Translations under genes and position numbers: made by a program
NCBI GenBank assembly: GCA_964247055.1
Contig: OZ176056.1
Span: 4,340,001-4,404,000, forward strand
Length of the DNA stretch: 64,000 bases
Reading direction: 5' to 3'
Source: Paragordius varius
Lineage: Eukaryota > Animalia > Nematomorpha
In this document: positions 14,778 through 62,500 of the stretch, piece by piece
Layout of the letters: every line of letters begins with the position of its first letter
Position numbering within the stretch: position 1 is the stretch's first letter
Notes under the pieces: model-generated
What the model saw: the letters and a program-made list of their open reading frames with translations, nothing else
Told to the model about the DNA's origin: nothing
Database searches by the model: none

Positions 14778-23216
<8,439 letters not shown>

Positions 23217-30266: not shown

Positions 30267-30690
30267 CAGTAGCGTATGCAGTAAAAGATTGTTAGTGCAA
30301 AATAATCTTAACACAAAACAGGGGGACAATTTTCATATATTAATTATCACAGTCCTATTTATAAACATATCCATAATATAACAGTTGTTAAAATCCGTAA
30401 TATAACGATAAAGGATAATTAAATAGTTGTGTCGTACTGATGAGTGCTAACAAGCACGAAACTAGTCTGCGATTACTATTGATGAAGGGTTTCACATATC
30501 GTTTATAATTTCTATTTATAATTTCATTTAATTCTATTTAATTATCCTTTATCGTTATATTACGGATTTTAACAACTGTTATTACAAAACATAACCAATC
30601 CGTTCATTACCATTACAATATCCATAATATCCCCATGTTTTGTGTTCATTATTATTTTGCACTAACAATCTTTTACTGCATATGCTACTG
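30267..30690. mobile_element. TA-flanked Tc1/mariner-type MITE carrying the nested hammerhead fragment
   Basis: TIR CAGTAGCGTATGCAGTAAAAGATTGTTAGTGCAAAATAAT / ATTATTTTGCACTAACAATCTTTTACTGCATATGCTACTG, with TA on both sides. Confidence 0.8.
30422..30480 (+). ncRNA. Minimal type-I hammerhead ribozyme (Penelope/retrozyme-like)
   Basis: CTGATGA (30437-43), stem II GTGC-TAACAA-GCAC, GAAA, a 2-bp helix III within the palindrome ACTAGT, and GTC cleavage triplet ending at 30467. Helix I is GTCGTA/TGCGAT, extended by AATAG/CTATT. Confidence 0.85.
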
Positions 30691-38308: not shown

Positions 38309-38864
38309 GGATTTATAGTTCAAGCATAAATACAAATGATGTCTTAAATTTGGTATATTGTTAAAATTACATATTTAACAACACATTAAACCTTGGTTTC
38401 GCTTTAAAATTTATAGTAGTTATATTATAAAAATATTTATAATAAAATCCTAATGTAATATCTTGATACTATTTGCATGTAAGCCATCAAAAATATCCTG
38501 ATATATATTTTCTGATAAAAAAGAATTTTTATCTTTTGGTAATCACGAATGATATAAAATGTTATCTGCACTTTAGTAACTTAATAAAAAATAATTCCAA
38601 AATACCTACATTTTAAAAATAATTAATGGTAATAAATGCTTCATTTCAAAAAAATATATCAACAATTTATTCAAATCTGTAACTAGTGACGCCCAGACAA
38701 ATAAATGATATTATTTAAAAGCTACTGTAAGGGACGGTTTCATAAAATTATTCTTTATCCTAAAAAAATTGGATAATATAGCCTTAATATCTATATAAAA
38801 ACAACGCATTTTTACATTTTTGCATTATATCATGTTTTTTATTCGTCCAAACATCTAGCATTCA

Positions 38865-39400
38865 ACACTCCGATTTAAATTGAGGTATATAAATACCCCC
38901 GACCATATTAAAGTTGATATTTTAAAAAAAATTGAAAGAAACGGTCCCAATTTAAATTTATGTTTCGATCTTAATTAAATTATATAAATAGGCCGAAATA
39001 TCTAAATAAAATTTTGTTTTTATAAAAAATTTCCATGTCAAACTACTTCGAAGCCATTTTTGTTTTGCAACATTTTTGCACAGTATCGTGATTTTTAAAG
39101 CTAAAATGAAAGTTAATTTTTCATTTAAATCACATCTAACATTGATAGAAACAGAAAATGTGGTTTATTTTTTATAATTTTTAAATTTAGATAACGCACA
39201 CATGTCATGTTTACTATATTTTTACCTTTAGGTTGTACCTAAAAATAAGTAATTATCAAGTATTTTTGGATGAAATTTTTTATATATTTCGGTTTATTAG
39301 TGTTATATAATTGACTTCAAGCATTTAATTTTAAACAGGCCTGCGGTGAACTACCTTAATTTGAATCAAAGGACTGAATTGAATGTGTTGTATCCAAGAG
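38865..39400 (-). mobile_element. MITE family 2 copy (reverse orientation)
   Basis: Reverse-complement match to 5639-6212; ends ...GTGTTGTATCCAAGAG|TTAA. Confidence 0.75.
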
Positions 39401-39720
39401 TTAAACAAAATAGTGTTTTATTTTACAATTTTATATATCTAGCTAAACATGTCACATTGTCTGAATATTTAGCTTCAGTTTTATTCATAAAGAAAATTAT
39501 ATCATTTTTTAAATACTTATTGTATTTAGGTCGTGCAATGGTTTCAATTTTTTCCATATTTTTAGAAATATATTATTTAAACAGGCTTGGACAAGGCCCC
39601 AATTTAAATTAGAGGAGTAAGAATATGTGCCAATCAAATTATTATTTTATTCCAATTTTAAATCCGTAAAATAATGGTAAAAAATTAAATAGAAAATTAA
39701 TTGAAAGTTATATTTATTAA

Positions 39721-40300
39721 CACTTGGATACAACAGATTCATTTTAGTCCTTCGATTCAAATTGGGGTAGTTGGATACCCCAGGCCTGTTTAAAAACACA
39801 TACTTTAAAAAGTATGGAAGCAATCGAAACCATGGCATAATTTTGGACTTTTATAACATTAATAAACCGAAATATATAAAAATTTTATTCAAAAATACTT
39901 GATATTACTTATTTTAAGCTAAAACTGAAAGGTAAAAATTTAGTCAACATGGCATGTGTCAAATTGTAAAATTAAAAAATAATACAAAATAAACCGCTTT
40001 TTCTATTTCTATCAATGTTAGATGTAATTTATATAAAAATTAAGCTTTAGTTTTACCCTTAAAATTAAAAGAAGACGATATTTTGCAAAATTTTTGTAAA
40101 ATAAAAATGGCGTCGAAGAAGTTTGAGATGGAACTTTTTTTCAAAACAAAATTTTATCAAGATATTTTGGCATATTTATATAATATTTATCAGGATAGAA
40201 GCATAAATTTAAATTGGGACCGTTTCCTTCAGTAGTTTTTTAAAAATTTTAATTTAAATTTAGTCTGGGGTATTTAGATACCCCAATTTGAATCGAAGTG
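39721..40300 (+). mobile_element. MITE family 2 copy, full length with TTAA on both sides
   Basis: TTAA at 39717-20 and 40301-04; collinear with 5639-6212. Confidence 0.8.
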
Positions 40301-40339
40301 TTAACAGAAATTATAAACAATATGTAAAACCTTTTCGTC

Positions 40340-40396
40340 AATAGTAATCGTTGACTAGTTTCGTGCTTCTTAGCACTCATCAGTACGACACAACTT
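40340..40396 (-). ncRNA. Second copy of the minimal type-I hammerhead ribozyme
   Basis: The minus strand reads GTTGTGTCGTA-CTGATGA-GTGC-TAAGAA-GCAC-GAAA-CTAGTC-AACGATTACTATT. The core is the same as at 30.4 kb, with a loop II change and an A.A mismatch at the first helix I pair. Confidence 0.8.
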
Positions 40397-42500
40397 ATCA
40401 TTATCATATGAATTCGACAACTGTCATTACAAAACATAATCAATTCGTCATTTACCATTACAAAAAATATTTATATTGAATTAGATAGACAGGCTCGAAA
40501 GTCGTAAATTTTAAAACTGCTCTAATTACTCATTTTCTTAAATAAACGGGAAAATTCGGAACTGAGTAATAAAAAAATTAAGAATGCATATTTTTCCTAA
40601 TTATTTGGCAAAATTTATTTAAAGGCATGGTGGAAACGGGATAAAAATGTTTTAAATAATATAAAAACTGTTTAATATTTAATGTGCTGACCATTTTTAT
40701 CATCTCAGAATTTTATTTAAAAAATTAATTTGTATTAAAATTTGGGTAAATTTTGTGAAAACACATTTATTCGACGCCGGTGATCGAAATTTTCTGTATC
40801 ATCGAATTATATAGAAATTATATTTGTTAACTTACAGTATATCGTAATTAACATCAATTAATTTGAAATATATATCCAGATGACATTTTTGATTTATATT
40901 TGCTATTATGATATCATGTTATCAGGACTTATTTTAAATTATTTTATATTAATTTTCATTATTTACTAAAACATTTTTATAACGGTTTGACCATTTATAT
41001 CACTAATTAGCTTCAGCAACACTTAGCCAAAATATAAATTTTTAACAAAAATAGGCTATTTTAACATTTATATATATCATTATAAGTTTAATAATTTAAG
41101 TATCTTGTTTCATTAATCATATTAAAAATAAAAGGATTTTTATTTAAATTTTTTTGATCGACTGGAAAATGGTTGTAGTCGAGTCGATTTTTACAGGTGC
41201 CATATATAAAACCTATCCATAATTTGAATATTTTTTTGAAATAAAAAAATTGTTTTATTATCAGTGCTGTTTTTACCATACGTACTAATGTAATTGATCT
41301 ATATGTTTATAAAGATGTAGAATGTCGGGCTTTAGACAATTATGGGAAAAACTTATATAACCATGCTTTCAAAGAGGGTGTTGTAATTCAAATGTACCTC
41401 GTGTGAAAGAGGAATTTAAATTAGTACCTTAATTCGACCCCGCGTGCGTGCTAATGGAAACGTTTTAATTAGAATCCAAAGAAATATTTTTCCATTCAAT
41501 TTTCATAAGTAGTCATTATATTTGCTCGTTTAGGTGCGTCCCGTTTTAAAATCCGAATTAGAAAAAAACATTGGTTTAGTTTTAATTATCCAGAAATTCT
41601 GTAGCTTATTCATTTTCAAAACCGTTATATTTATTTATAAATGTGTCGACGGCGGCATTGTCATTTTACTTCCCTCCTTAGTTCATCCCCATCCCCTAGC
41701 TGGAGTTCTTAAACAAATATAGGAAGATTAATTTTATAGTTTGCAACTCTTATCTCCACCCAGGCTTTTGAAAGAATACATATTGGCTTTGAAACGATTT
41801 TCTCAAAAACGTATAAAAAATAGTTTTAAGTTTCTATATTGTCTCCAAGGTGAAGAGCCAATCTTTTAGCCGTTCTAATCACGTTGTTCGAAAAAATAAA
41901 TAAATCTTGATTTCATCTATATTTTATTAAACGTATAAGGGCGTAGATATTATTATTAAACCTATTAATTTCTATTTTAAGGGTAAAGTGTCAAGCACTT
42001 TTTAGTGCGAAGGCCATGGCTCCACCTTTGAATACGCGAGATTATGTAAATTAAAAAAACTTTGTTATTACTACAGCATTATTTTCATACGATCCCTTTC
42101 TGGGCTGAAATCAAGGGGGAGTCATTTTTTAAACTCTGGGATTTGTTGCTAACCTGTGTAAATATATCCTAGATTGAACTTTTTGATCATTTTTTAGATT
42201 AAAATCTTGTATTGTAATATAATTATTATTTGAATATGAGCAATTTGAAAAGGCACATTTTTAATAGACAATAATAAAGGGATAGTTAGGATTCATTTTT
42301 AGTTGGCATTTAAGGCACTGAGGTATGACCCCTCGTGAGGCCAAACAGTTATTTATAAAATATCATTTTTTTATTGTAAAATTCTTTTTTGTTAAACTTA
42401 TGTTCTTCACCTTTTGCCCAGCGTTGCAAATAAATAAAATTGAATATTTTGAGTAAGATAAACTTTAATTTAAAATTATATTTGATTGGATTTGATAAAA

Positions 42501-44333
42501 ATGAAAATATTTCTTTCAATATTCATTGTATATGGTAATTTTTTGGACAAATTAACAATGTCAATAAATATTAATGTTAACCCATGTCAAATTTAAACTT
42601 TTGGTTTCTTAACAATTTATAAAATTTATTAAGTTTTAATTATTAAAAAGATAAATAATATAATATCAACTATCGGTCCGAAAAAACTAATTAATATCTA
42701 TCAGATTGGAATTAATATCTGTGTCTTAAATTTATTTATGCCAATTTTTAAATTTTTTATGTAAAATATAGGGATAGTTTTACACTTTAAAGCAAAAATC
42801 TATTTTTACAATATATATTGACTGCATTATTCAAAAAATTTAAAATCGCATTTATTAGATTTTATGCTAAACATTTGAAACATAGTTTATGACTAAAAAA
42901 TTGATATGCTTTTTGCCTACCATTTTTACACATTTTTTTTATTCATGGTTTATAATTAGCTTTGTAATTTAAATTTAAATTTAAATGCAATCGGAATTTC
43001 TGACCTTAAAACTTACCTCTAAATAATAAATGATTAATTATCTATCATAAATGTCGAAAACAGGCCCAATATCACATATAAAGGTAATGAAGCTTTATAT
43101 ATAAAATATAATTATATCAAAGGATTTGTATTAACTTTTGAATAAAAGGAATACAATTTAAAAATGATTTCTAATTTTTTTCATTTTAAATTGAAATAAA
43201 ATCCGAGGTTATCCCATTTTAATCTCATTATGCGGACAAATAAATTTTTTAAATGTTAAATTAATAATATATATTTTAAGGACATTCCATAGCTAATGGC
43301 TATTTTAACGACACAAATACGAATCCCAATCATATTCCAATTTGGCCAACTTTGAACCATAAAAGGCCAGGTAAGAGCATATATATATTTTTATAATTTG
43401 AATATGTATATATATGATTTCAAAGTCTAATTATATAAAATGAATTAAAAAGTATATAAAAACACTTCGTATCCAATAATTGTTAAACATCAGTCAGGGC
43501 AAGTTATCATTAAGCTTTCATAAAATTTACTACCAATGTATAGAAAGGGGTTTTATATAAAAAATGGTGACCAACATAAATGCCTTAGCGGGCCAAATTT
43601 CTAACTCGAAAGCCGCATTTCAAATATATATGAACAATCATTAATAATTGATAAATTCAAACATAAAACTGTAAAATATGTATACACAATATAACAATTT
43701 TTTAGACTTATTTTCATAAAATTATTTAAGAAATATCCATTTTACTAAGATTTTGTGAACATATTTTTGTTTATGAAGTTTCATACGCGGGTGGCGTGTT
43801 GGTCACCCTTAAACCTAACAAAAATAAAGCTATATTAATCAACAAAAATAGATTGGCAAAATATGGATAAAAGTATGGGTAATAGCCATGCCATTGGAAA
43901 TATTACTACGAACAGAATTGATGAAGTTTATGCAAAGCCTAAGGCATACAAATTTACCAAGAATGGTATCCCTGCTAAAATATAATTATTATTGATTCAA
44001 ATATTTTTTTAATTAAGTTTGTAATTACAATGATATTGTTGTTTTCTATAGATTTAGACTTAAAATTAAATAAATCTCGTACGGTTTTGGCAAGTAATAT
44101 TTATTTATATTATAAATTTTAACCAAATTATATCGTATAACCCTGATATAGAAGTCAAAACAAGATCAATTTCTGATTCCAACTTTGTTTTAAGGATTAA
44201 TGGTAAAACATTTTAATATGTACGTTTTTAGTGAGGGGTTAATTTTATATATATATATATATACTTTAATATGTAAGAGAAAAAATTTTTTTGTTACTCA
44301 TCCATTCAAAATTTAGATAGCTTCCAAAATTAG
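42501..44333 (+). CDS. Unknown secreted glycoprotein, paralogue A: N-terminal exons (and a possible short isoform ending DSFQN*)
   Basis: Exons 42501-42534, 43281-43370, 43852-43965, 44052-44093, 44152-44202 and a stop-containing exon 44317-44333. They give MKIFLSIFIVYGHSIANG/YFNDTNTNPNHIPIWPTLNHKRPDWQNMDKSMGNSHAIGNITTNRIDEVYAKPKAYKFTKNDLDLKLNKSRTVLAKVKTRSISDSNFVLRIN. The signal peptide is split over exons 1-2, all introns are phase 1, and differences from paralogue B are mostly synonymous. Confidence 0.8.
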
Positions 44334-45025
44334 ATTAACATTTCTAAATTTTTAAATGACGAACGCGTCTCTCAGATAGAGATAATATAGTGGAATGACA
44401 TTGGTAATTATATTCGGGTCCTACTATCCAAAAATTATGATTTAAAAAAATTTAGGTCTAAAAAAATTATTTATACCAACATTGAAACCTAGGTAAATGT
44501 ATCCTCCTATTGTTATTTTCAATAACTAAATAAATTAAACAGTCCTTAACTCGTATCTTTTAATCCTAACAACTTAATCTGCAATTTTAATATTATTTTG
44601 CCAGATCTCTACAATATAAAATAAATTCTTTGGATATGCTCAACATTAAATTATCTAATTTAAATATTAAAATTCGGTGCATATTGTTAAATATAGAAAT
44701 CTATATGAAACAATTATATAGTTATTCCAAAAATAATATATTTTTATTTGTAATTTTAGGTTAATGTCAAACATTAAGTGATATTATAATAATTTTTAAC
44801 TATATTTGCAACAATCAATTATCGTTTAAAGCATTTTTAAATTTTTGCCTCAAATGTGACATAATTAATTTAGGGGTCTAGGAAAGCTGGTTTTTTTACT
44901 TTCTTTAGACATCAAAATATTACATCAATATAAATGGTAACAAACTCAATTTCTTAAAATAGATTTTATAAAAAAATTTTAATATCATAAATGTTTATTA
45001 AGCCTTTACATTGCAATTATTTTAG

Positions 45026-48000
45026 ACACTAAAAATATCACGGCAGAGGTTGAAAAATGGATTCAGGATAAAAATATATCGGAAAATATTCCCGGTCAGC
45101 ATTTGTAATTTTTGTGATTCATTGGCCAAATTTATATAATTTACTAAACATTTTATCTCTGAATAATTTTAGAATTTAACTATACAAAGTTATTGATCAT
45201 GGCACCCAAAGATAAAACAAAAGGTTTATAAATTTTGTATAATGAATTCATGAAAAATGGAAATTCCTTAAAATTTAAATCTTTCTATTATTTTATACCA
45301 ATTCAGCCTTGTGATTTGTCCAATATAACTCGTATCTCTATAAATTTGTTAACAAAAAATAAATTAATATATTAATTTGATAAATTTATATCCGGGGTTT
45401 TCAAATGTCTTTGGATTATATAATTTTCATAGGTCTTATTATGATACCCATTTTTTCAATTTAGCCTTTGTTCAAAATTAAATGTTCCCTTAATTTTTTG
45501 CAATTCATTAGAAAGACAAAATATATATTTAAAGCAATTTCGTCCATATATATTTTTTAGAGATATCCGATATAGTGGCAAACATATCCCATGCTTCCAG
45601 TGTCAATGTTTCTCAAGATACAAATACGCATGGTTTATTGACAATCTATAATTATATATTTTATTTTTTATTTAATTATATTTTATCAAAAGTAGACGTT
45701 GTTTTAGGTAAATTTTGGTTATAACATGCTTAAACTTACTGATATAGTATTGCAAATCGGTAATTTCTTTCATTCACATATAGATCAATGGTGTTAAACA
45801 CGTGGCTTGCGATAAATTTCAAAACAAAATTTTACGAAATCTATTTTCTTCAAATTTTGAATTTCCTAAATTTGGCAATTAACTAACCAAAAAATGTTAA
45901 AATAAATAGTTGTTTTTGTCGACTTAAGTCTAAAAACCAATAAAATATTCGTTGATGCCCATATATTTTACAAATGCGGCCCGCCTGATTTTTTGTTTTT
46001 AAGTTCGGTCCCTGAAGCCATTTGTGCTAGACACCCCTGATATATAAATTGTGTGCTAAATTTCAAACCTTTTTAACGTTTTAAAACGCTAAATTTTGTG
46101 ATAGAATGCTTCTCGCAATTTTAAATTTAAAATGTAGATCTTGTAAGATATAAGAAATACAATTATAAAATATTCAGTACTCAATTTTATTATATATGTT
46201 TTATTTTTTTAGTTTAAGGTTTTTTACTTGATATTTTTTATAAAGTGGTACTAAGATTATATTAATAAATCTGGGTTCTAGGAGGTGTGTGAAACTCTAT
46301 ACACATAATTATAAAATAGCTATATATAAAATATTTTAGGTGGATACTCAGGTAAATAATATTGCAACCATATCGTTATTTATTATTTAACTATTCATTC
46401 ATTAATTTCTGTATATTGCTTTTGAAAGGTTATTTAAAATTCATACTGTTTTCATGATTGAAGATAGATATTAACATTTAATATACCATTTACAAGTTTA
46501 AATTCACCCTTGAACAATTCAATCGAACAATTCAAATTCTCCCTTGAACAATTCAAATTAACCCTAAAAAAGAGTTATCTGTTTTCGAAATAATATAACT
46601 CTTTATTAATATGAAATATATCTTTGTGGCATAGTTTACTATTTTTCAGTATTATTTTAATTTAAAACAAAATTTTATTTTTGAAAATATATAAAAATAT
46701 AGGTAATTTTTAATTTTAAAAAACATATAATTTATTTGAGGGTGAATTTAAATTGTTCGAGGGTCCATTTGAATTGTTTAAGGGTGAATATGAATTGTAA
46801 ATGGTATATTTACAATTTAACTTTTGCATATAATGTTAATATTTATTACCTAAGTAATATTAGAAAATATATCCTATAACCTATGATAAATTGCATATTT
46901 TTTTACAGTCATTGGCATGTTGTCTTGTGCAATAGGAGCAAAATTAGCTATGGATTCAACAATTACTACAATAAGTGCTCCAAGTATAAATCCTTTTACA
47001 GTAAAAATTAAAATTATACGATCAACATACGTAAAAATATAAAGACAAATATTTTTATATAAAAGACAAACCATACTTTTTGAAACCCTAACTTTTTCCT
47101 ATGTAAGTTATTTAGTTACAATAGTAAAATGATATTTTGTTGGTAACATATGTCTATCATGCCATTTTAATCAAGTAATATTTAAATATCAAGATAAGTG
47201 TCATTGTCTTTTAGAAAAAAATATTCGTCTTTATATTTTTATGTTTGTCCGTATACTTTCAATTACTGTAAAATCTATGCTGTACATAATTCTGAACCTA
47301 ATCAACACAGCAAATATTAGACGAAGAAATTTTAAGTTTTGTAAATTTATAAACTATATGAGAAAACCCTGTGAATATAATTAGTATGTCAGGCGTCGTT
47401 AAAACGCTTGCTTTTGTATGCGGACTCTAAGATCAATGGATAAATAAAATAAATGTATGGTTTTAAGATTTTAACGATTAGTATATTGATTGAAAGAAAT
47501 CTGTAACTTTTGTTTTGTTTAAAATTTTTTGCAGAGTTAAATTTAAAAAATGTTTAACATTTATTTATACATATTTTACACTTTTCAATCGGTTGATATA
47601 ATTTTTTATTCCGATATAATTATTTTGATTAATTTATTTTGGGTATTTATTATACATTTTGATGGTTGTTTATTTCACACTATAGTAGGGCAATTTGCAA
47701 CACAGTAGTTTAATATAAAAAAAGACAGGAAATAATTGTTTATTCAACAATTTGTTGTTTTTTCAATTAACTATTGTTTTGCGAATTGCCTTACTATATG
47801 GTGAAATAAGCAACCATTAAAATGCATACTGTATTATCGGTTATATTACATCTAATGTTTTCTAAGCTAGTCATAATCAGTAAAATCCCAAATATATCGG
47901 TGAAAAATTTACATTACAAAGTGATGTTATTTAAGTTAAAAAATTTAAAACATTTGGCCTAAATTCGATTAATATAGTTTATGCCATTATGTTTTTTGCT

Positions 48001-50565
48001 AAGAAAGGAAAACAAAATTTTTCTAAAATATATATATATTTTAAAAATTCGAAAAAAAAATTATGGTTCAAATGTTTAAAGCTAAAGAAACCTAAAGTAG
48101 TTAGAGAATAAATAAAAACTCGCATAGAAGTAATTTTTAGGGCCATGTGAATGAGCCAATTTTCAAGCTCATTCACCTGGATTATGGATTATGAGGAAGC
48201 ATATGTTTGAGGGAGGTGATTGAGTTTTTGAGGTGGGAGTTTTGAAAATTTTTATCAGTATGATGGATAACAGTTCTACACGCGATTTAGGTTATTTTGT
48301 TCAAATAATTTATAGATATCCATTCATCTTTATGATCCGTAAATAAATTCAGCAATGACAAAAAGCTTAAGGTCTGGGAGGCTTTAGCCGAAGAAATGAT
48401 CAATATTTAAATTGGGCAATCACAAAAACATTAGAATCGAGATTGAAAAGAACGGAAGACAAAATGCTATATAATGATAAATTCTACCATTGAACTAGAA
48501 CCAATAACAGCTTTTATCAGAATAGACTTCGGTATTTTGGACACATAGACAGATCCAGTATAGACTCACCTGCAAAAGAAATTCTTGATTTACAGATCCC
48601 TGCCCTTAACCGAAAAGGGAGGTCTAAACAACTGACTCAAATCATAGAACAAGACTTTAAATTCCTGAACATACCTCGAAACGCAACAAATGATAGAGAC
48701 ATATATCGTAAATTAATCCTTGGAATCCCAATAACTGGGCCAAACCAATAATACATTTATAAAATATATTCATTTATTGTGTAAAAATAAATTATAAATA
48801 AAATTATGTCAAATTAATTCTTTTTTCCGATCTACTCCTGTCTGATGGCTATTCAATATAGGTGTTGTCTGCTCTTCTGATAAAAGTTTGCTAACTCATT
48901 TTCGTCAATGTTACCTATCGCTTTTATAGAAATATGTATTACCGAATACTCCGATTATCATTAGTAAGTAGCAGAGTTTCATGTCTAAAATAAACCAAAT
49001 TTAAAATACTCGATAGTATTCCTGATTATTTTACCATTTAGAATGGTTTCTTCTAAATTCTTGAAAAAACATATCAGTAGTTATACAATGATTTTCTAAA
49101 TATTCAGTAAACTTGATTATAAACTCGAACTAACTACCATTTCTTGCCTAAATATATAAAAATAAATCATCTAACCTTTAGTACGCATTTGCCCGAAAAA
49201 TATTTTTTAATCCATGTCCAAAATTTCCAAAACCTACCATATACATATATTAAATATACTTTATTAAGGCATATACAGTTTGCAGATTCCAAAAATTCTT
49301 CCTAGTTCTCGAGATATCGGCTTTTGTAACAAGCTTAATCCTGAAAAAACCAGGATTAAAAATTCCTCCATCTCAACAGGATGAGCGAGGCTCATTCACC
49401 TGGATCATTAAAAGTGGTGAATGAGCCTGTTCAATTGGCTCATTCACATGGGCCTTAATGTAAAAGGTTACCTGTGAAATTATTTTTTATCCGCCATATT
49501 GGAATCATCACACAATCTTTTATTATTTTAGTTTTTTGCGCTTCTAAGACATACCATTAACAATTCAAATTGACCCTTAAACAATTCAAATTGACCCTTA
49601 TACAATTCATCACCCTTGAACAATTCAAATGTACCCTCGAATAATTTAAATTTACCCTAAAAGAAATTATGTGTTTAAAATAAAAATTACATATTTCTTT
49701 ATATATTTAATAAAAATACGTTTAAAATTAAATTGAAAAAAAAACTAAGCCACATATATGTTACTGATGATATATATTAGCCCGAAAACACATAATTTAT
49801 TTTTAGGGTGAATTTGAATTGTTGAAGATGGAATATATATTAGCACATCTCATATTTTAAGTTAAAAGCGGAAAATAATGATGATGTTCAATATTTTTCA
49901 ATTTTTCAAAGTGCTCATAAAAAATTCTATTGTAACTGATTGGACTCGTTAGGGTGCATATATCTTTCCAAAGATTAGATATGTTTGTAAACAACATATT
50001 TTTAATTTGTCAACAAAATACATTAAAAAATATATAAACTAAAGCGTTTTTAGTTATCATTTTTTGCAATTTTAGGTTCAATAGCACTGAACACAATTGG
50101 TTCACAAGTACCGTCATCCGTTTCATCACACAGTTAGTCAACATTTTGTAACGTAGTACAAATTTTAAATAAAACAAAATAACCAAATTTACAGTACTGG
50201 AAAGAGTAATCTTTTCTCGGGAGTCGTAACTTTCCAAAATAAAATATTTAGGCCGCAAATTTTGTTAAACTAATGCTTTTATATCATATGTAGTATGTTG
50301 GAGTGTTGAAATATATTCAACTTTTTAAATTAATTTCAACCAGCTTGGCAGGTGCCAAAAGGCTATAAATTTAGCTATTTATCAAAAATAGGTTTTGTTA
50401 ATCGTCCCTCATTCATCCAAAATTTTTTTTGATTAGCGACAGAAAAGACCTATTCTTTTGTGAAGAGGAATATAGAAATTAGGTTCCTATGGTATTTATC
50501 ATGATAATTAAATTTTACTGAAACGTTTACGACTGGTTGGTTAAAAATAGCAGTTTCTGGCAAAG

Positions 50566-50621
<56 letters not shown>

Positions 50622-51349
50622 AAAATTGAGATTATACGGACAAAACGTAAAAATATAAAAACATTTTTTTTTCAAAAGACAACCACTTTAACCTTAATTT
50701 ATCTAATAAAAAATAATCACATTCGTTAAATACATATTTGATTATGTTACCAATATAAATCTCTATTTCATACTTTACAGTTTAAAACAAAGAATCATAT
50801 TTAAGCAACTTAACATTCAAAATATGGTTGGTTGTCTTTTAGAAAATAATATTTGTCTTTATAATATTAAGTTTTGTCCGTATAATTTCAATTTGTACAA
50901 TATATATATAATAATATAAAATTGCAGTTAACATATAAATAAAATTTATTTTGCATTTTATTATCTTATAATGTATTTCCAGGGATTTACTAATATATTT
51001 ATTTTCTTAACATAATCACACCGTTTTAAAAATTATCTCTTAAAAAGAGTGTTTTATTGTTATATAATTTTAGGTCAATCTTTACCTTCGTTTTCATCGT
51101 CCAATTCGCTTCCGTCTTTACGAGAAACTGGGTTAACTGGATCCATACCCAATTTGGGGGCAACAAATATGGCCGGTTTAGTTGGTTCCATAGCCAGTTT
51201 GGGGGGATCAATTAGTGTGGGCGCTATTTCGCAAGCCTCGTCTTTAGGGTTAAGTTCGTTTGAAACTCAATCTGCAAACACGCTTGATTTTGATTCCCTA
51301 GAATCAGTCTCAGAATCAGATGTTAGTGAAATCACGGAAAATACGGATG
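45026..51349 (+). CDS. Middle exons of the micro-exon locus (phase 1-1, lengths divisible by 3)
   Basis: Well supported: 45026-45094 (69 nt), 45173-45223 (51), 45561-45632 (72), 50076-50132 (57), 51074-51349 (276, Ser/Gly-rich then acidic). Tentative: 45696-45707 (12), 45748-45759 (12), 45910-45927 (18), 46340-46351 (12), 46909-46983 (75), 50483-50491 (9). Connectivity is inferred only. Confidence 0.6.
46481..46809. mobile_element. Foldback-type MITE family 1 (type copy)
   Basis: TIR ATATACCATTTACAA / TTGTAAATGGTATAT. The arms are built from tandem 21-bp AATTCAAATTCACCCTTGAAC units. Confidence 0.8.
47660..47817. repeat. Short hairpin element (MITE-like)
   Basis: ATGGTTGTTTATTTCACACTATAGTAGGGCAATTTGCAA / TTGCGAATTGCCTTACTATATGGTGAAATAAGCAACCAT. 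Confidence 0.6.
48140..49454 (+). mobile_element. PIF/Harbinger-type non-autonomous element with a MADF-like remnant
   Basis: TIRs GGGCCATGTGAATGAGCCAAT / ATTGGCTCATTCACATGGGCC flanked by TTA on both sides, with internal repeats of CTCATTCACCTGGAT. Remnant peptide NKFSNDKKLKVWEALAEEM at about 48.34-48.40 kb resembles a MADF domain. Confidence 0.7.
48430..48755 (+). mobile_element. 5'-truncated RTE-like LINE 3' end nested in the Harbinger-type element
   Basis: QNRLRYFGHIDRSSIDSPAKEILDLQIPALNRKGRSKQLTQIIEQDFKFLNIPRNATNDRDIYRKLI matches the RLRWxGHVxR...GRP...W...DR..WR C-terminus of RTE-clade ORFs. It ends in a TAATAA tail. Confidence 0.8.
49551..49836. mobile_element. MITE family 1 copy
   Basis: ATACCATTAACAATTCAAATTGACCCTT... 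with five units on the left arm. Confidence 0.7.
50567..50618. repeat. (TA)26 microsatellite
   Basis: Read directly from the sequence. Confidence 0.95.
50619..50897. mobile_element. MITE family 3 (TATACGGACAAAAC...AAAAGACAACC arms) inserted at a (TA)n tract
   Basis: Inverted arms at 50619-50690 and 50825-50897. Related remnants lie at about 4010, 13620-13820, 16100-16330, 22030-22320 and 47020-47285. Confidence 0.65.
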
Positions 51350-51949
51350 GTAAGGATAAAGAATGTCATTCTATTTTTTTCCTCATAAACGATCTGAAAT
51401 AACATTATTATTCAACTTAGAGTACTTGTAAACGTGATTATTGTACTTAAATTTACTTATAACTTACTTTTAGACCTAAAATAAGTATATGGTAGCAGAT
51501 TGATGGTTTAAAATAATTTTATTATCCTTTAATTACATTTCGGCTGTTATGGAGTATGTATTTTATAAAAAAATAATAATTTAAATTTATTTGAATGACT
51601 AAAACTGCCTGTATTCAAATCTGCATTAAAACCTACACAATTATTAAATTGATTAATTATTGCTGAGAGATTTTTCTCAGTTGTTTAAGAGATGAATCCT
51701 CCTTCAAGCTAGTAACTCAAATTTACAAATATATAAAAACAAAAGATAAATATTATACTTCATAATTTGCCAATTCTGGGATGTGTCTGTCTGTTTGATC
51801 TATTAGATTTTATATACCTGGCCTATAAAGAAGTTTTTACCAATTTTCGGTAAATACATACGTAATTTAAAATATTAATTTAAATTTCATTAAAAATATT
51901 GTACATAGGCTTCTACACATTTCCCCATCTCTTAGGTAATATATGAATG

Positions 51950-52790
51950 CTACTCAAAAACTGATTGTCTTTTGCAAAAAACCATTCGTCATTTCATTTT
52001 CTAACTTGATTGAAGTGCTGCTCTACGACGGTGTCCCATTGATGCGAAGTTTATTAATCAAATGGCGCCAGGCCAGGAGAGTTTAATTGATGCGAAAAAT
52101 TCCCTTCAAAGCGATTTTGAGGTGTCTTTCACTGGTTTTGTAGTGTGCGACGAAGCGTAGAACAAATTTAAGAGAATTCAAAAAGTTTATAATACACAAT
52201 CCCGCTCTTTTCCGACACAGAGCATGGTTTTCCTGCTGAAGTGATTTGGCCTGTGGATACAGCTTGACAAAACAAAAGCCACGACCTTTCCGCTTTGGTT
52301 TTATAAAATAAAGCTATTACTCGTCGCCTGTCTTAATTTGATTCAAAAATAATTTCTTTAAGACGTTTTGAAGAAGGATTTCACAAGTAATTTAACGATT
52401 TTTATTTAATGTTGATTGATTTATGTAGGACCATCGTGTTTGTTGGTCTTTCCCATTGGTTGTAGAAATCTATTGATTGTTTTTTGTGATACATGTAATG
52501 TTTCTGCCAATTGTTGTAAAGTGTAATTGGGTCTTCATTAACTTGCAATTTAGCTTCGCAGTTATGTGGTCCACCAGAGTGCCTTAAGTCTTCACATAAA
52601 ATCACATTACAATATTTCAAAATATGTTTCACATGTGTGATAGATCATGTTAACCATATATTTCTACCAGCAAACTATAATAAACAGCCTTTTTCTGGAA
52701 ATGCGTGCCGCAAATGTTCCTTTCGAACACAAAGTTCGAAGTAATTACTGAATGATAAAATAAGTCGCTAAATTTTGATAAACTCTTGTC
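51950..52790 (-). mobile_element. Mariner (IS630-Tc1-mariner) transposase relic inside an intron of the micro-exon locus
   Basis: Frame-broken motifs on the minus strand: EDLRHSGGP (compare ED..RSGRP), FLNQIKTGDE...KPKRK (compare FL.RIVTGDEKW...NPKRK), KTMLC...GIVYYKL and NSPGLAPFD (compare YSPDLAPSD). TIRs were not resolved. Confidence 0.8.
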
Positions 52791-53446
52791 GTTTAATGTT
52801 AGATGAATAAAAATTGCATTAATCGTCTGCTTACTTTTCTATCTTCTCTCAATTAAACCGGTAACTTAGGAATACTTTTGGAAGGGGGAATAAAGATTAG
52901 AATCTCAAAATGAGTACCCACTATATTAGGATATAATTAACTAATAACTAGTTACAACAGCTGACTATAACTTGAACTGAAAGATTTTTATATTTAAGGA
53001 GATTTAGCTTTTTTAACTGTTTAGTTTTTAACATGCGTAAAAGCAAATTTTTGGGTTGATATTAGTTTAAATATAAAATTGCTAATTTTTAGTAAATAAT
53101 TTCGTTAATTGCAGCATATAATTTCAATAATTATACATGCCCACCTAGAAAAATTTTGTTTGGTTTTAATTATAAATACATAAATGTTATTCAATAATAA
53201 TTATGATAGTAAATAAATTTTAAACTTTATAAATTTCAAATTTTGCATTGAATTATTTAAAATTTAGGTTTTGCTGTTTTAAATAAGCATGAGATAAGGG
53301 AGGGATTAAAATTTTAGCTTATTAAGCTATATTAAATTTTGACCGAAGCCTTTCTGATAATATAGAATGATGAATAATCTAAAAAATAATTATTAGTTGA
53401 ATCTTGCATAAATTACCAATTGAACACTAGATATATATAAATCTAG

Positions 53447-56400
53447 TTTCCGTATCGGAACCACCACATGTTTGTAAGTTATTTTTGAAATTAAAATGAA
53501 AACTATCAAGGATTATATTAAAATTTATTGTATGCTAATCGCTCTAGCCATTTTTATTTATTTTAAATAAACTTAGAAATAATTATATTATATAGTACAA
53601 TTACGAAGGGAGATTGAAGCTTTATGTTAGTTATTAAGTTTTATTAATTTTTAAAGCAAATTATATTGGAGCCAGTTGTAAGATATATATTAATATTTAT
53701 TTTAGTGAATAAATCTTTCCAGAAATTAGTTTTCTGATTTTTAATAAATCCTCTTTTATTAGATCATAGTATGATACGTAATGCCCTAACACGTGGTTAC
53801 AACGGTAATTAAAATTAATTATGAAATTTTATCTAAATCTTTTTATTAAATATTAAATTAATATTAATATTATATATAGCTATATTTAATCAAGGTAAAA
53901 CCGCTATACTTAACATTTTTAATGCATGCCTACTTATTAGCAATCCAATCACCCTATGAAAGTAATTGTATATTAAATAAAATTAATTTTTATAATTTGT
54001 TAACAAAATGTAATTGGTTACATTTATTTTTTTGTAGTTTTTCAACAACACGGTACGTTTTAGTTCGATAGAGTTAATTAAAATTAAACATTCAATATAA
54101 AATAAAAGACAATTTTTTTTGAAAAGCCAACCATACTTTTTTAAACAACTTTACTTAATTAAATGTAACTCATCGTTTTGGAATGTAAACTAGGGGATAA
54201 ATATGTAAATTAATGCATTCAATTATTACAAATAAATTTGTGATTATATAATTTAAAGTTTTATCCTTTCAAATCAAATATTTATTTTTTAGTTTAAAAA
54301 TTTTATCTCTATAATTTAAATTATTACTGTAATTTTAAATACTCGTTTAATTATTAAATTTTATCATATTAACGCGATAATAACTTTATTAATTTCTTAA
54401 ATAAATATACCATTTACAGTTCAATTCAATACACCCTTAAATAATTCAAATATACTTTCGACCATTTCAAATTACCCTTAATCAATTTAAATTCACCCTA
54501 AAAATAAATTATGTGTTTTCGAACTAATATTACTCATTATTAATATGAATTATATCTTTATGGCATAGTTTATTATTTTTTCAGTATTATTATAATTTAA
54601 AACAAAATTTTATTTATTAAAAATATAAAAATATAGGTAATTTTTAATCTATAAATATATGAGTTATTTGAGGGCGAATTTGAATTATAAATGGTATATT
54701 TCAGATAATACATTTGATATTACAGTAATAGATATACTTTGCTAGAAAGTTAATTATTGCCAAATAGTAAATACAACAAAGGATGTTATTGGCTTATAGT
54801 TAATTTTTTCACTTTTTAAAATTATTAACCAATAATACTGCCCTTTGTTGTATTTACTATTTGGCAATAATCAATAACTTTCTAGCAATGTATACTTACT
54901 CATACTGAAATTTTAAATGTATAATACCATATCTGGCTTTAATTACGAGATATATATAAAAAACCTTGCATAATAAATTTGGATTTAATATTTTTCAAAA
55001 AAATGTATTAAACCGAGGTAGGACGATAATTTTAAGTACTTGTTCATTTCTAAGACTCGCATTTTTTAATTTTAAGTGATTTAATTATTATTATTGTAAT
55101 AAACTTGCTTACCATAAAGAGTGTGTTTTTGTTTGTCTTTAAATTTAGCCAACTGAAAACAAAATATTATAAAAGTCATTTGATCTCAAATATGTAAAAT
55201 ATTGAGCAAATAATTAAATTAATGCTTCTGAGTACGGTAAAATTTGACTCTCAAAACGCTTTTTAGATTATCAGCCTAATGTTTATCAGTTGTTGTTGAT
55301 CAATAATCGTTTCTATCAAAATAAGTTTGACCAATATAAAATTTGGCCTAACATTACGCCTAAAATTTTAAGTAGTTAGCTAAAAGGTAAATAGACGTGA
55401 TTATAACGGGTATTATGTAAAACGTAAGTCAATATAAATTGTATTTTGTTATTAGCCAAAATTAAAAATCCGATTAGGTCGAATTATATAATCGCCAAAA
55501 CAAATAATTTTATTTTGTATAAATAATTAAGATGCTTCTAAATATTAATTGGCATTTATTTGGGCATCATAATGAGTTATAAAAATCAAACTTATTATTT
55601 TACTATAGTTTGATTGCAATCATTTAAATTTAGCAATGATTGTATTTGTTTGAAACATGAATTTTCGATTACTACTGATAATCTTTGAAATTTAAAAATA
55701 AAAAAATGGTTGTTCTACACTCACAATTATAAATCAGAGGGTTTTTTTCATCGCTTATAACCGCTTAAAATAATTGGCTTTTATAAATTATTTTTTCCCA
55801 TCTGATTTTATTCGTTTGCCAAAAACATATAAATATTTAAAATACAATCTAGGTGTGAGGGATATGCTGGAACGTATGATTTTTTCATTATTCATTATGT
55901 ACCCAAAATTTAATTTTATGTGTCCAAATTTTGCACATATTAATATTTTAATCGGATTTTACAAGTCCGACTTTTCTTTTATACAATTAATATGTCGACT
56001 ATACTCCCCCTCCCTATAGCCTCTAATTGTGGAAAACATGGGTGATATCCACATCATGCCTTTTTTTAGATATGTAAAATTATTTTTTTTGAAATTTGAA
56101 TTTGTAAATTACAAATATTTCTTTTATTAATTTTGACTAATTTTAAGGATTTTCTACTCCTAGTAAGTTTGTAAGAAGTTATGCTAGTGTGATTATAGCT
56201 CAAAAATTGGGGACTGATATAAAAATCAAAAAATGCATGGATTACCGCGATGTAATTGGTTTATAGGCAATATTTAATTGAAAAATTTATTATAATAGAT
56301 CTTACTTTATATATTAACTTATGAATAATATTATTTAAAAAACATAGTTTATCGTCACTTAAGTAAAATTTTTAATTACATACTACCGCCAATATATTTA

Positions 56401-56981
56401 ATATATTCTCTACATACTACACATATATCTAATTTCAGACACCTTTCAAAGTAAAATATTGTTTTTTATGTGACATTAATATCTTGTCAATTATAGAAGT
56501 TTCCGATGTCGCAGAAGGTTAACAAACTTTATATTTAACTTTTCAGATTTAGTAAGTTTGTCTGAGGGTAAGTGTTTTTGTGCCTATAAATATCATATTA
56601 ATAAATAAGAAATGCAATCTTTCTTGGAAGGTACGATTGATAGATATTATAAAATATAGAGGCTAAACATTTCTCCCAGGGTAAAATTATTAAAAAAAAC
56701 TCATTTTAAACATATAATGAATTTATTATAGCTGAGCCTGAATCATTGTCAGGTAAAATTACTCAAACTAATCAGTAATTTTTTTAGAATTAAAGGATTA
56801 CCTTACAGGTTGGTTTATGATTTCTTTGATAAATTTTTTTATTATATTAATATAATAGAGCGCATTAGTGTCTTTATGAGTATGCAGCATTATCCACAAT
56901 ATTTGAATAATTAAATTGTATAGCTCGTAACAATTTCGGTATCAATCAAATTTTATACATTTAGCGGAAATGGAAAATTAA
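53447..56981 (+). CDS. 3' micro-exon arrays of the locus, ending ...TRNNFAEMEN*
   Basis: Exons 53447-53473 (27), 53596-53625 (30), 53657-53677 (21), 53763-53804 (42), 53880-53894 (15), 53941-53961 (21), 54038-54052 (15), 55267-55371 (105), 55395-55424 (30), 55853-55873 (21), 56439-56450 (12), seven 21-nt exons at 56497-56879, 56924-56938 (15), and terminal exon 56965-56981. All are AG/GT bounded and stop-free in phase 1. AATAAA follows at 57031. Confidence 0.8.
54405..54699. mobile_element. MITE family 1 copy
   Basis: Same TIRs and internal sequence as 46481-46809. Confidence 0.8.
54733..54894. repeat. Short near-perfect hairpin element (MITE-like)
   Basis: TTGCTAGAAAGTT...TTGCCAAATAGTAAATACAACAAAGG / CCTTTGTTGTATTTACTATTTGGCAA...AACTTTCTAGCAA. 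Confidence 0.65.
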
Positions 56982-57300
56982 TATGAACTCCTACTACTAA
57001 ATATTTTTTTCAATATTTATATTCACTGCCAATAAAAATAAATTCAATTTTGATTTTTATTTGTATTATTTGAACTTAATTATACAAAATTTAAATATCC
57101 AAATGATTGATCACAATTTATTTGGACTCTATTTAAATTATGAAGATTAAATTTCAATATGATTTATCTTAATTATTTTATCACACAGTGGTGCAATTTA
57201 ATATTTTAATTATGAAACATATACAAATTCATAGAATGTTTGTATCGAATTGATAAATGCGGTAAAAATACTGATAAAAAGTTATGTTAATATTGATATT

Positions 57301-57845
57301 TACATTTCGATTTAAAATGGGGTATCTAAATACTTTAGACTAAATTTGACTTTGGATTTTTAAAAAGTAGTGAAGGAAACGGTCCTAATTTAAATGCTTC
57401 TATCCTAATAAAAATTATATAAACATGCCAAATATTTTGTTTTTTTAAAAAAAATTTCCATGTCAAAATATTTAGACGCTATTTTTATTTTACAAAATTT
57501 TTGCAAAATATCATTTTAATAAGGCTAAAATAGCTAAATTTTTATTTAAATTACATTTAACATTGTTGGAAATAGAAAAAGCGGTTTATTTTGTATTATG
57601 TTTTAATTTTACCATTGCACACATGTCACGTTGAATAAATGTTTACCTTTCGGTTTTAGCTCAAAATAAGTAATATCAAGTATTTTTGAATAAAATTTTT
57701 TACATATTTCGGTTTATTAATGTTATATAAATGAAAAATTTTGTGCTCTCAATTCCTTCAATATTTTTTTAAGAATTTATTAAACAGGCCTCGGGTATTT
57801 AACTACCCCATTGAAGGACTAAAATGAATGTGTTGTATCCAAATG
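57301..57845 (-). mobile_element. MITE family 2 copy (reverse orientation)
   Basis: Reverse-complement match to the family; ends ...TGTGTTGTATCCAAATG|TTAA. A further partial right end lies at about 59520-59665. Confidence 0.75.
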
Positions 57846-59519
57846 TTAAAAACGAAAACAATTACATTTTCATTGTAGTTAGGCAGGATAAAAATACACA
57901 ATCAAAGACCACCTAATTATTAGTAGTTATATGGTATAAACTTATATCTCCTAAGAACAATATTTTATTAATTAATTTAAATTTTTCCAACTAGAAACAC
58001 CTTAAAAATGTATAAGAAGTAATGGTCATCGCACTTTGGCCTCGAATTTGAGTAAAAGAATTATAATTTCATATATTTATTATATATATCTCGACCACTC
58101 TGCGTTTTTGAGTAAATTTAAATGCGCGTTTACACCGTTTCCATAATATTTTCAATATATATGTATTTACTAGACTCTTTAATAAAAAAAACCATCAATG
58201 CATGGTTTTATATCAATAGACAACAATTTTAACTTTTTTTAACTGCCATTCTTGTAAATTTTAAATTTATTTTATTAAAGTACATAATTAGTATATCTGA
58301 AAAAAAAAATTGGTCTAGCATGCAAGAATTTTTTTATATTAGAGTTTATCGATAATTTTTGGCCCCGATTTAACATTAAACTCGAAATTTCGAAAATTAA
58401 AAGTTTTAGATATGAAGCCATGTATTTTATATCATTCAAAAGAGCGCAAAAAACTGCATCTTTTAAATGGTAGTAAGTCATTTAAATCAATCGGATGTAA
58501 AAGTTATTTGGATTTATATGGTCGAAATTTTCAATCCTTAAATAAGTCAAGATTTTTCACATGCAAACCAATTTGAAAATCATATAAATTATTTTAATAT
58601 AATTATTAGGGTTATATTAGTATTTAATTTAAAAAAAATGTTTGAAAAAGCTTTTGGTTTGCTTTTTTAATATAAATTATTATTATCAAAAATATTTTAA
58701 CTAGTGGATATTAAAATGCATAGTTATAACTGTAAATTTATTACATAATGGCTATAAAAGATCAAAAATACCTTAAACTTTGTTTTTATCTTTAAAATTT
58801 CGAAATTATTAGCCTCGTAAAGAAAATAAATTAATATTGATGAGATGATAATTTTTAAAAAACAAAAAAATTTAAAAATCGCTGTTTTGAGTGTCATAAA
58901 AGCAATAAAAAAATGTTTCAATCAATAAAACTTCTTGTGTTATCTTTTTTAAACATTCATCACCATCTAGACAAAGTTTGAGCTATTTTAATCCATTAGT
59001 TTTAAAATAATAATAATAAAAATGCTCTCGCTTCGCGCGTTTGTCGCTCTGTCCAATATTAACTGTCGATGTAATAAATATTAATATGCATTTTATAGAG
59101 TTTTATTACTCTTTCGAATGATATATTACAAATGGGCATTACTTGTATATTTTGAAAAAAAAACATTTTGTAGTAAAATTTTGATAAAGAGGGCGCATAA
59201 TCGAAAAAATCAAATTATACAAAATTCTTCCAACGAGTTATAATTTTTATTTCATATTTACTGTTAAAATGTTACTAAATATCAGAAATTGCAAAAAACT
59301 CGAGCGGCAGAAAAATTTGTTGTCCAGTGAATTCATACTGTATATTGATTCCATTAATCTTTAATTTTATTTTCAAATTTACTATTCTATATTATTATAA
59401 TTTTTAGTGTTTTAAATAATTTTTAGACGGGAATTTATGTTATTATTATTATTTAATGGTACTTAAAAATTAAGAATGTAGTACAGAAATTTTTAAAAAA
59501 TTATTTTTTTTTAAAATCA

Positions 59520-62500
59520 AGTGTCGAAGAATTTTTGGAATATTTTCACAGATATTTTGGCATAATTATATAATTTTATTATATAGACGCATAAATTTAA
59601 ATTGTGACCGTTTCCTTTAGTATTTTTTCAAAATCCTAACATAAATTGAGTAGGTATTTAGAACCCCAATTTGAATCGAAACATTAATTTAAAAAATTTG
59701 GGTAAATTTTGTGAATGCAATGATAGAAATTTTCAGTATCATCGAACTATATAGAAAGTATATTTATTATACAGTAAATCGTAATTAGCATCAATTAATT
59801 TGAAATGACCTAAATGACATTTTTAATTTTGGAAAATAGTTACAATGATATCATGTCATCAGAATTTAGATTTTTTTATTATATACTATAACATTTTTTT
59901 ACCTTTTTGACCATTAAAACCATAAAGTATGCTTCAAAGTTTTGCGAATATTTCAATTTAGAAGAAAAATAAGCATTTTTCTATTTAAACTTATATTTTA
60001 AATATATTTTATTTTTTAGAGTAGTTATTATATATCCTTTTTATTTATCATTAAAAATAAGATTTTTATTAAATGTTTTTTGATTGAGTGGAAAATGGTT
60101 GCAATCGAGTCAATTTTTACCGAACTACAGTGGCATATATCAAACCTATCCGTATAATTATAACATTTTTTGAAATATAGCGTAAAATTTGTTCTTTTAT
60201 CAGTGGTGTTTTTCATACGCTCTTATGTAATTGATCTAATGGTTATAAAGATGTAGAATGTCGGTTTTTAGACAATTGAATAAAAAAAACATATATGACT
60301 ATATTAAAGAGGGTGTTTATAATATAATATGCCGAGAGTTTAAGAGAATTTTTTTAATTAGTCCCTTAATTCGACCCTGCCTGCATGTAAATGGGCACGT
60401 TTTAATTAGAATCCAAAGAAATATTTTCCGTTCTTAAATCTCATAAGCAGTCATATTTATATTTGCCCTTTTAGGTGCGTCCCGATATGAATCCTGGCAT
60501 AGATATAATTATCCAGAAAACTTGTAGCCCATTCATTTGCAAAACCATTATATATATTTGTAAATGAATCGACGGCGGCATTGTCATTTACTTCCCTACT
60601 TAGTTCATCATTCCCTAGAAACTGAAGCTCTTAAATAAAATATCTTTTATCTTCACCCAGGTTAAATAAATGGCTCTAATAAATTCTTGAAAGAGGTGTA
60701 GGCTTTTTGAATTTACAAGAATTATATAGTAGGCATTGTCATTTTTATTTTACCCTTATTTACTGTCCATTCCACAGAAAATGGAGCTCTTAAATAAATT
60801 TATAACTTCATTTATAGTTTGTCACTATTAGCCACACAGCCTTTTGTCCAATAATTTCTAGTATTGTGTCCAAGGTGAAAAGCCACTCACATAAGCGCTC
60901 GTATTTAGCCCTATCATATTTTTTAATAACAACTAACCCAGATTTTAGCTATTTTTCAGTAAACGCATTAGGGCATGGTTATCAGTTTTGGACCTATTAA
61001 TTTCTAATCTGAGGGTATATCTGGCACCTTTTTTGTCCTTTGACAAGAATTCCACCTTTAAATACGCGAGATGTGAATTACAGCTTTATTTTTACCCAAC
61101 TCCTTTCTTACAAGTTTTCACACCTTTCGGGCCTAAAAAACATGGAAGAGTTATTTTTAACTCTCGGATTGATTGTAAACCTGTGTAAATGTATCATAGT
61201 ATGAAAGTTTTGACCATTTTTTGAATAATTAATAGTTAAATATGAATAATTTGAAAAAGCGCAGTTTCAATACACAATAATAAAGGTATAGTTAAAAAAT
61301 CATTTTTCGTGAATATTTATATTTTGTCATTCACTTTATCTGTATTCTTGTTAATTTCATTTCTATTTGGCCGATTACCAATTATGTTTAACATTGAGGC
61401 ACGACCCCTCGTGAGGTCAAAATATTTATAAATATCATATTTTTTAGTGTAATTTTTTTGAAACTTAGGTTGTTCACCTTTTACCCAGCAATGCAACAAA
61501 TTAAATTTAATATCTATATATATTATACATTGAGTAAGATAAATTTTAATTTAATATTTTTATTGATTGAATTAAAATGAAAATATTTTTTTTAATATTC
61601 ATTGTATATGGTAATTTTTTGGACAAATTAACAATGTTACTAAAATGTTACAAGCCAAATTTAAACTTTGGTTTCTGAATGATTTATAATTTTTATTGCT
61701 AAGTCATAATATATTAGGATGTTAAAGGATACTAAAAATATAATATTATAACTTTTGGTTTTAAATAAACAAATTATTATCTAATTGGAAGCTTAATACT
61801 GTATTTAAATTTATTTATGCCAATTTTTAAAATTTTATATAATATATGGTACACTTTAAACAAAATTTAAATATTTTTACAATATATATTGACTGCACTA
61901 TTCAAATAATTTATCATCGCATTCTCATCTCAAACTTTGTGTCCTCGAATGTTTTAATATGTCGAACATTTGACATATTTTATGACTATCCTTTTGAATA
62001 AAGGAATACAATTTAAAAATGATCTAATTTTTCAATTAAAACTAAAATAAAATCCGAAGTTATCCCATTTATAATTTGATAATGCGGACAAAATGTTAAA
62101 TTAAAATATATATTTTAAGGACATTCCATAGCCAATGGCTATTTTAACGACGAAAATACGAACAATCATATTCCGATTTGGCCAACTTTAAACCATAAAA
62201 ATCCAGGTAAGAACATATATCTTATATATATATATATATAATATAACCATTAATAATAGAATAAATTTTAAACATTAAACTTTATGCACAATATAATAAT
62301 TTCTTATGTTTTGCCCCTTTTATAGACTTATTTCCTATAAACTATGATTTTATAAACATTTTTGTCAATTATGAAGTTTCATATTTTTTGGGTGGCGTGT
62401 TAGTCACCCTTGAACCTTACTAAGCTATATTAATCAACACCAATAGATTGGCAAAATATGGATAAAAGTATGGGTAATAGCCATGCCATTGGAAATATCA

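Follow-up and report, generated by a model that had tools for sequence, protein, structure and literature searches.

A predicted orphan gene of Paragordius varius built of symmetric phase-1 exons

Here, we describe an orphan gene in a stretch of 64,000 nucleotides (nt) of Paragordius varius (Nematomorpha) DNA, taken from GenBank assembly GCA_964247055.1 (contig OZ176056.1, positions 4,340,001 to 4,404,000 of the forward strand) and hereafter called the window. The gene model, at 42501-56981 on the plus strand, is a chain of 31 exons whose internal members all leave the reading frame undisturbed, and exons 1-7, when compared with a tandem copy further downstream, carry the mark of purifying selection. 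Our best explanation, held with moderate confidence, is that the locus encodes one mostly constitutively spliced, lineage-specific secreted glycoprotein, in which a heptad tail would oligomerise or dock on a membrane while the glycosylated part is displayed. The locus had been singled out in an earlier note on this DNA, and the fate of the claims made there is given with the results that bear on them.

Exon chain, tandem paralog and selection

The model comprises 31 exons, 29 of them internal, with 1335 nt coding for 444 amino acids (aa). It opens with MKIFLSIFIVY/GHSIANG in exon 1 (42501-42534) and closes with TAA at 56979-56981, the start and stop positions that had been proposed before. All 29 predicted internal exons, of 12-276 nt, have lengths that are multiples of three and are flanked by phase-1 introns; a first model built by hand, uninterrupted between its ATG and its TAA, had 32 exons, and 30 of its 30 internal exons were of this symmetric kind. 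Exons of at most 36 nt (18 of the 29 internal ones) hold 25.8% of the coding sequence. The introns of the 31-exon model have a median length of 86 nt, with 16 of 30 below 100 nt and 12 of 30 no longer than 60 nt, and of each long intron 33-62% is repeat or transposon remnant (miniature inverted-repeat transposable element, long interspersed nuclear element (LINE) or mariner). Gaps of 3.1, 2.1 and 1.8 kb divide the locus. The features of the gene and its copy are as follows.

42501-42534 (+): exon 1; start codon, hydrophobic core of the signal-like peptide, phase-1 donor; 32 of 34 nt identical in the paralog
43281-43370 (+): exon 2, 90 nt; end of the predicted signal peptide, NDT sequon; the only exonic insertion or deletion relative to the paralog (3 nt)
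43852-43965 (+): exon 3, 114 nt; five synonymous and one replacement difference from the paralog; homologue searches blank
44052-44093 (+): exon 4, 42 nt; from the hand model and the paralog alignment
44152-44202 (+): exon 5, 51 nt; same basis as exon 4
44317-44333 (+): candidate alternative terminal exon; adds five residues before TAG (TAA in the paralog); acceptor weak
44909-44936 (+): 28-nt candidate outside the model; good splice sites in both copies, length not a multiple of three
45026-45094 (+): exon 6, 69 nt; same basis as exon 4
45173-45223 (+): exon 7, 51 nt; same basis as exon 4
45561-45632 (+): exon 8, 72 nt; carries the last sequons
45693-45707 (+): exon 9, 15 nt; 12 nt with an alternative acceptor
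46340-46351 (+): exon 10, 12 nt; very strong splice sites
46909-46983 (+): exon 11, 75 nt; first weakly hydrophobic stretch and the only Cys of the protein
50076-50132 (+): exon 12, 57 nt; Ser-rich
51074-51349 (+): exon 13, 276 nt; rich in Ser and Gly, with the second weakly hydrophobic stretch and an acidic end; edges conserved in a paralogous contig
53447-53473, 53596-53625, 53657-53677, 53763-53804, 53880-53894, 54038-54052 (+): six micro-exons of 27, 30, 21, 42, 15 and 15 nt
55853-55873, 56148-56162, 56439-56450 (+): three micro-exons of 21, 15 and 12 nt
56497, 56547, 56610, 56660, 56732, 56788, 56859 (starts; the last exon ends at 56879) (+): seven consecutive 21-nt exons, one heptad each; introns of 29-51 nt
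56924-56938, 56965-56981 (+): 15-nt exon, then the terminal exon with TAA; AATAAA at 57031
61577-61610, 62120-62206, 62447-62560, 62635-62676, 62731-62781, 63647-63715, 63793-63843 (+): exons 1-7 of the paralog, which continues past the end of the window

The earlier note had counted more than 30 candidate exons of 9-276 nt, nearly all of them symmetric, an observation that is confirmed with corrections. The 27-nt candidate at 51909-51935 was dropped, since it reads, in antisense, as the C-terminal codons in a mariner transposase remnant and lies under multi-copy contigs; those at 53706-53728 (23 nt) and 44909-44936 (28 nt) were excluded as well flanked yet not symmetric; and the 9-nt candidate at 50483-50491, with a weak acceptor, is optional in the model. 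An in-frame rescue of the 28-nt candidate, by an 8-nt exon with an 18/19-nt intron, was not adopted (acceptor scores 1.0 and 0.5). The transposase remnant itself is a broken mariner/Tc1 copy at 51890-52900 on the minus strand, its final codons looking like a symmetric exon of 27 nt when the other strand is read. Intron 11 contains an inverted-repeat element (48141-49456), within which 48494-48748 is the tail end of a LINE reverse transcriptase.

The paralog, absent from the earlier note, starts at 61577, which is 19,076 nt downstream of the orphan gene start, and the upstream DNA was duplicated with it (40709-42500, plus strand, matches 59668-61576). Throughout exons 1-7 every splice dinucleotide is kept and both copies have the same exon content. 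In the frame of the model these exons differ by 14 synonymous and 13 replacement changes (proportions of synonymous and non-synonymous differences, pS 0.169 and pN 0.038), giving a ratio of non-synonymous to synonymous substitution (dN/dS) of 0.20 for exons 1-7 (Fisher p 9e-5), and the other two frames yield 10 and 18 stops. Only one of the 80 alignment gaps between the copies is exonic, with a length of 3 nt, and the changes in exons 6-7 follow the phase-1 frame. By this comparison of sequences the orphan gene is real, and in exons 1-7, where selection is measurable, that selection is purifying. Further downstream, the alignment of a 2945-nt contig from DNA run X1 is confined to 51070-51358, which covers exon 13 with its edges; it contains 46 differences and a net gap of 6 nt. 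In a probable allele the listed differences number 8 over 145 bases of intron and 1-2 over 137 bases of exon (p 0.04-0.10). The RNA runs X6 and X8, which carry the same species label, gave no coverage of the exons within 51050-57049, and this is not evidence of silence.

Between exons 5 and 6, an intron block (44790-44945, corresponding to 63390-63545) is about 90% conserved between the paralogs and holds the 28-nt frame-breaking exon-like piece as well as a possible 18/19-nt intron; a search of this block against Rfam matched no RNA family.

Exon symmetry was compared with chance AG...GT pairs, as had been suggested, using a splice-site matrix drawn from 30 acceptors and 26 donors of the Abl, CHMP3, COX15, sedlin, trypsin-like and spondin-like exons only and applied at three thresholds with no frame information. 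On the plus strand, open candidates with phase-1 introns on both sides (class 1-1) numbered 34, 23 and 16, where the eight remaining phase classes averaged 17.6, 10.6 and 6.6, an excess of about twice the background (p 0.0009-0.003); the minus-strand counts were 16, 9 and 6, and in 20.9 kb of intergenic DNA the frame-blind scan found no 1-1 excess. When each acceptor was paired with its nearest donor, eight of eight exons within 55800-56960 were multiples of three (p 1.5e-4), whereas the same rule over the entire locus gave 19 of 50, which is not significant. The symmetry therefore exceeds chance in the 1-1 class and in the 3' cluster and not in the nearest-donor test of the whole locus, a null result which implies that the background is high and that single small exons inside long introns are individually uncertain. 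In the 3' cluster the GC content is 0.38 for exons and 0.19 for introns.

Predicted product and competing explanations

The predicted N-terminus consists of MK and nine hydrophobic residues (Kyte-Doolittle 2.8) followed by a small-residue cleavage site, in agreement with the signal-like start reported earlier. The sequon-rich N-terminal part is likewise confirmed, with nine N-glycosylation sequons in residues 21-166 (3.1 expected for residues 1-180, p 0.0005). Two weakly hydrophobic Gly/Ser/Ala stretches follow, at residues 177-198 and about 260-280, neither of which scores well as a membrane span; the surrounding region is 32% Ser+Thr, and the single Cys of the 444-aa model is in exon 11. An AlphaFold model of exon 13 was uninformative (predicted local distance difference test score, pLDDT, 50). 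The acidic C-terminus contains seven consecutive heptads, one per 21-nt exon, with hydrophobic residues mainly at positions 2, 5 and 6, and in the spliced model peptide the hydrophobic moment of this helix peaks at 102 degrees (p 0.0003). The heptad exons are also slightly similar to one another in DNA (0.32 versus 0.27, p 0.011), as expected from an old tandem duplication.

From these features, a gene of about 31 exons, with its tandem copy 19 kb downstream, would give one mostly constitutive transcript and a protein of about 444 aa. The signal peptide would be cleaved and the region of residues ~19-175 heavily N-glycosylated, whereas the Ser/Gly-rich middle with its two weakly hydrophobic stretches would be flexible. 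The acidic seven-heptad helix at the C-terminus would either join chains as a coiled coil or dock on a membrane, and the glycosylated part would thereby be displayed in a coat, matrix or gland secretion. Uniform phase 1 would in turn be a trace of growth, in which frame-neutral exons were duplicated behind a phase-1 signal exon, one heptad per exon. Secretion and oligomerisation we infer from the make-up of the predicted peptide, and any host role, including the parasitic host interaction proposed earlier, would be a further step of the same kind.

Several observations weigh against this explanation. The hydrophobic core of the signal-like start is short (9 residues), and the 246 residues after 177 contain no sequon (3.4 expected, p 0.017), which fits a membrane span. 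Selection was measured for exons 1-7 only, and intron 5 holds two unexplained pieces, the weak acceptor at 44317 that leads to a stop and the 28-nt piece at 44909-44936. Further, function had to be inferred from composition, as the homologue searches were blank; these were run exon by exon, and such short queries may miss distant relatives of the whole protein. Exon queries gave no match in Pfam (best E 0.04, under the cut-off) and no significant match in NCBIfam or PDB, and matches were also lacking for the exon-13 open reading frame in a collection of 5.8 billion clusters, for exon 3 by HMMER among 1.84 billion representatives, for exon-level searches of JGI metagenomes and for exon 13 in the ESM Atlas. 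A glyoxalase-like ESM Atlas match for exon 3 (up to 0.87, 75-89 shared features) was rejected as chance. The results are consistent with the orphan status, without a recognised domain family, that the locus had been given before.

It is doubtful, though worth weighing first, that the locus is a generator of variation like the micro-exon genes (MEGs) of schistosomes, in which combinatorial skipping, especially of the heptad exons, would supply a host interface with secreted helices that vary in length and surface. Each of the 29 internal exons is frame-neutral, loss of one 21-nt exon would remove exactly one heptad and keep the helix register, several splice sites score low, and MEGs with amphipathic helices are known (PMC5825161). 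Run X5, labelled as another organism, also contains identical DNA over 51050-57049, with a depth of 3-5, which would suit a sample taken from a host; contamination or a differing label could account for it too. However, exons 1-7 have a dN/dS of 0.2, against high values in the mature regions of MEGs (PMC4350168), the introns of the heptad cluster measure 26-51 nt against 0.1-5 kb in MEGs (bioRxiv 2023.06.21.545858), the paralogs share identical exon content across exons 1-7, and phase-1 symmetry recurs in an otherwise ordinary spondin-like gene of the window. Phase-1 symmetry permits exon skipping and is no proof of its use, and the independent skipping and variation that had been read from it have no support so far.

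Unlikely as well is a single-pass type I membrane protein, with exons 2-8 as glycosylated ectodomain, residues 177-198 (exons 9-11) as the span and, on the cytoplasmic side, a Ser-rich tail that ends in the coiled coil. The distribution of sequons, nine before this stretch and none after it, favours such a topology, as do a 19-residue Kyte-Doolittle mean of 1.66, 18 uncharged residues and the presence of the only Cys; yet the biological hydrophobicity of the stretch sums to an unfavourable +2 to +4.5 kcal/mol in a position-independent approximation, a basic cluster after the stretch is absent, and exon 13 holds a second stretch of similar hydrophobicity.

We consider it improbable that the locus comprises two or more transcription units, or that exons 1-5 finish at 44317-44333 as a short product of about 115 aa with the downstream exons belonging to another gene. 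In each copy the AG at 44316 leads to a stop, TAG here and TAA in the paralog, an AATAAA lies downstream within a conserved block, and long gaps interrupt the locus, but this acceptor scores just 2.4, the gaps are filled with transposons, and the evolution of exons 6-7 fits the phase-1 frame. A second conserved exon combining an ATG with a hydrophobic, signal-like segment was looked for in the locus and none was found, so a conserved start for a second gene is missing. The choice between one gene and two or three, which had been called undecidable from sequence, leans to a single gene as the more likely case, given one start, one stop, no such internal exon, the frame of exons 6-7 and the tandem duplication of the unit. 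That the 3' micro-exons are cherry-picked chance AG...GT pairs is barely credible, for although about half of the low-threshold 1-1 candidates are expected by chance and the nearest-donor test is not significant across the whole locus, the eight of eight symmetric exons in the 3' cluster, its GC contrast, and a heptad periodicity that emerges in the spliced peptide and was never a selection criterion all speak against it.

Neighbouring genes and repeats in the window

The intron-bearing neighbours are Abl-type kinase, CHMP3/Snf7, COX15 and trypsin-like genes, together with two that we take to be sedlin-like and spondin-like; the last, otherwise ordinary, carries phase-1 symmetry as well. The Abl-type kinase gene (15859-23216, plus strand) has 5 of 13 internal exons symmetric, and long Asn-rich insertions lie between and inside its SH2 and kinase domains. 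In the Sedlin/TRAPPC2-like gene (25876-26372, minus strand) the introns measure 26, 22 and 23 nt and the frame is unbroken across all of them, which bears out the ultra-short introns noted earlier in the window. The window is AT-rich animal DNA with a GC content of about 25%, compatible with the 26.9% published for Gordionus montsenyensis (bioRxiv 2023.06.26.546503), though no proof of a horsehair-worm origin.

Three diverged tandem units of about 320-400 nt each, with raised GC, occupy 10326-11365. A 600-nt repeat family occurs at 5629-6216, 38864-39412, 39692-40319 and 57285-57871, with an inverted pair at 38864-40319 and another copy beside the 3' end of the orphan gene. A weak match to the hammerhead ribozyme HH9 (40327-40398, minus strand; 26.6 bits, under the gathering score) falls in a stretch resembling an inverted-repeat element at about 30400-30620.

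Likeness to known gene classes and what it means

Like schistosome MEGs, the orphan gene combines symmetric micro-exons, a lack of homologues, a Ser/Thr-rich disordered part and an amphipathic helix, and where MEGs have a signal peptide it has a signal-like start. MEGs are defined in PMC5825161 by about 80% of the coding sequence lying in symmetric exons of 6-36 nt, against 25.8% in exons of up to 36 nt here; their proteins have at most 189 aa and their introns 0.1-5 kb (bioRxiv 2023.06.21.545858), against 444 aa and a median intron of 86 nt, and exons 1-7 of the orphan gene are under purifying selection. The exon-by-exon searches detected no sequence similarity to MEGs. The gene is thus not a MEG, though alike in build and in its amphipathic helix, and the MEG-like label of the earlier note does not fit a gene with 26% of its coding sequence in such small exons, 16 of 30 introns under 100 nt and a dN/dS of 0.2 in exons 1-7.

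Aphid bicycle genes, in which nearly all internal exons begin at codon position 2 (Stern and Han 2022, PMC9168663), share with the orphan gene the many small phase-1 internal exons (29 of 29 begin at that position here), orphan sequence and tandem copies, and their signal peptide has a counterpart in its signal-like start. The published structure formula for bicycle genes gives the orphan gene 0.99995 (z 9.98, cut-off 0.72), and as the formula is trained on aphids this expresses likeness, not kinship. Unlike bicycle genes, the orphan gene has no CYC motif, although divergent members without a clear CYC are also listed in that paper (PMC9168663), and it has 31 exons against a mean of about 17 and a heptad-per-exon C-terminus. 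Bicycle genes are, moreover, a class expressed in the salivary glands of hemipteran insects. In build the orphan gene resembles two sets of host-interaction genes, the MEGs of blood flukes and the bicycle genes of aphids, yet it belongs to neither.

Modular extracellular proteins of class 1-1 arise by exon shuffling (compare PMC8001218 and PMC1626468). They resemble the orphan gene in a phase-1 intron near the end of the signal peptide, predicted here, in symmetric 1-1 exons and in secretion, which for the orphan gene is likewise a prediction. The orphan exons, in contrast, code for 4-38 residues each, with one of 92, and for no known domain; their unit is a heptad rather than a folded module, and searches for recognisable domains in the symmetric exons gave no significant Pfam, NCBIfam, PDB or Atlas match.

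We found no paper on genes of such build in Nematomorpha, in a literature coverage that is incomplete. A bolder idea, to which we give little credence, is that this lineage independently evolved phase-1 micro-exon secreted genes genome-wide, as a third origin beside MEGs and bicycle genes, and that one-heptad skipping tunes how long a secreted helix is, and what surface it presents, at the host interface.

Genes of such build are easily overlooked by automatic annotation, and protein collections with as many as 15 billion sequences gave no match to any piece of the orphan gene. The locus contributes a paralog-based selection test and a heptad-per-exon tail, and it makes testable whether symmetry is retained for skipping or is a mere trace of exon duplication, with the seven one-heptad exons as a clean read-out. 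If flukes, aphids and this animal did converge on this design, secreted proteins of host interfaces or of a matrix would share a recurrent mark in their uniform phase-1 micro-exons and could be found from structure alone.

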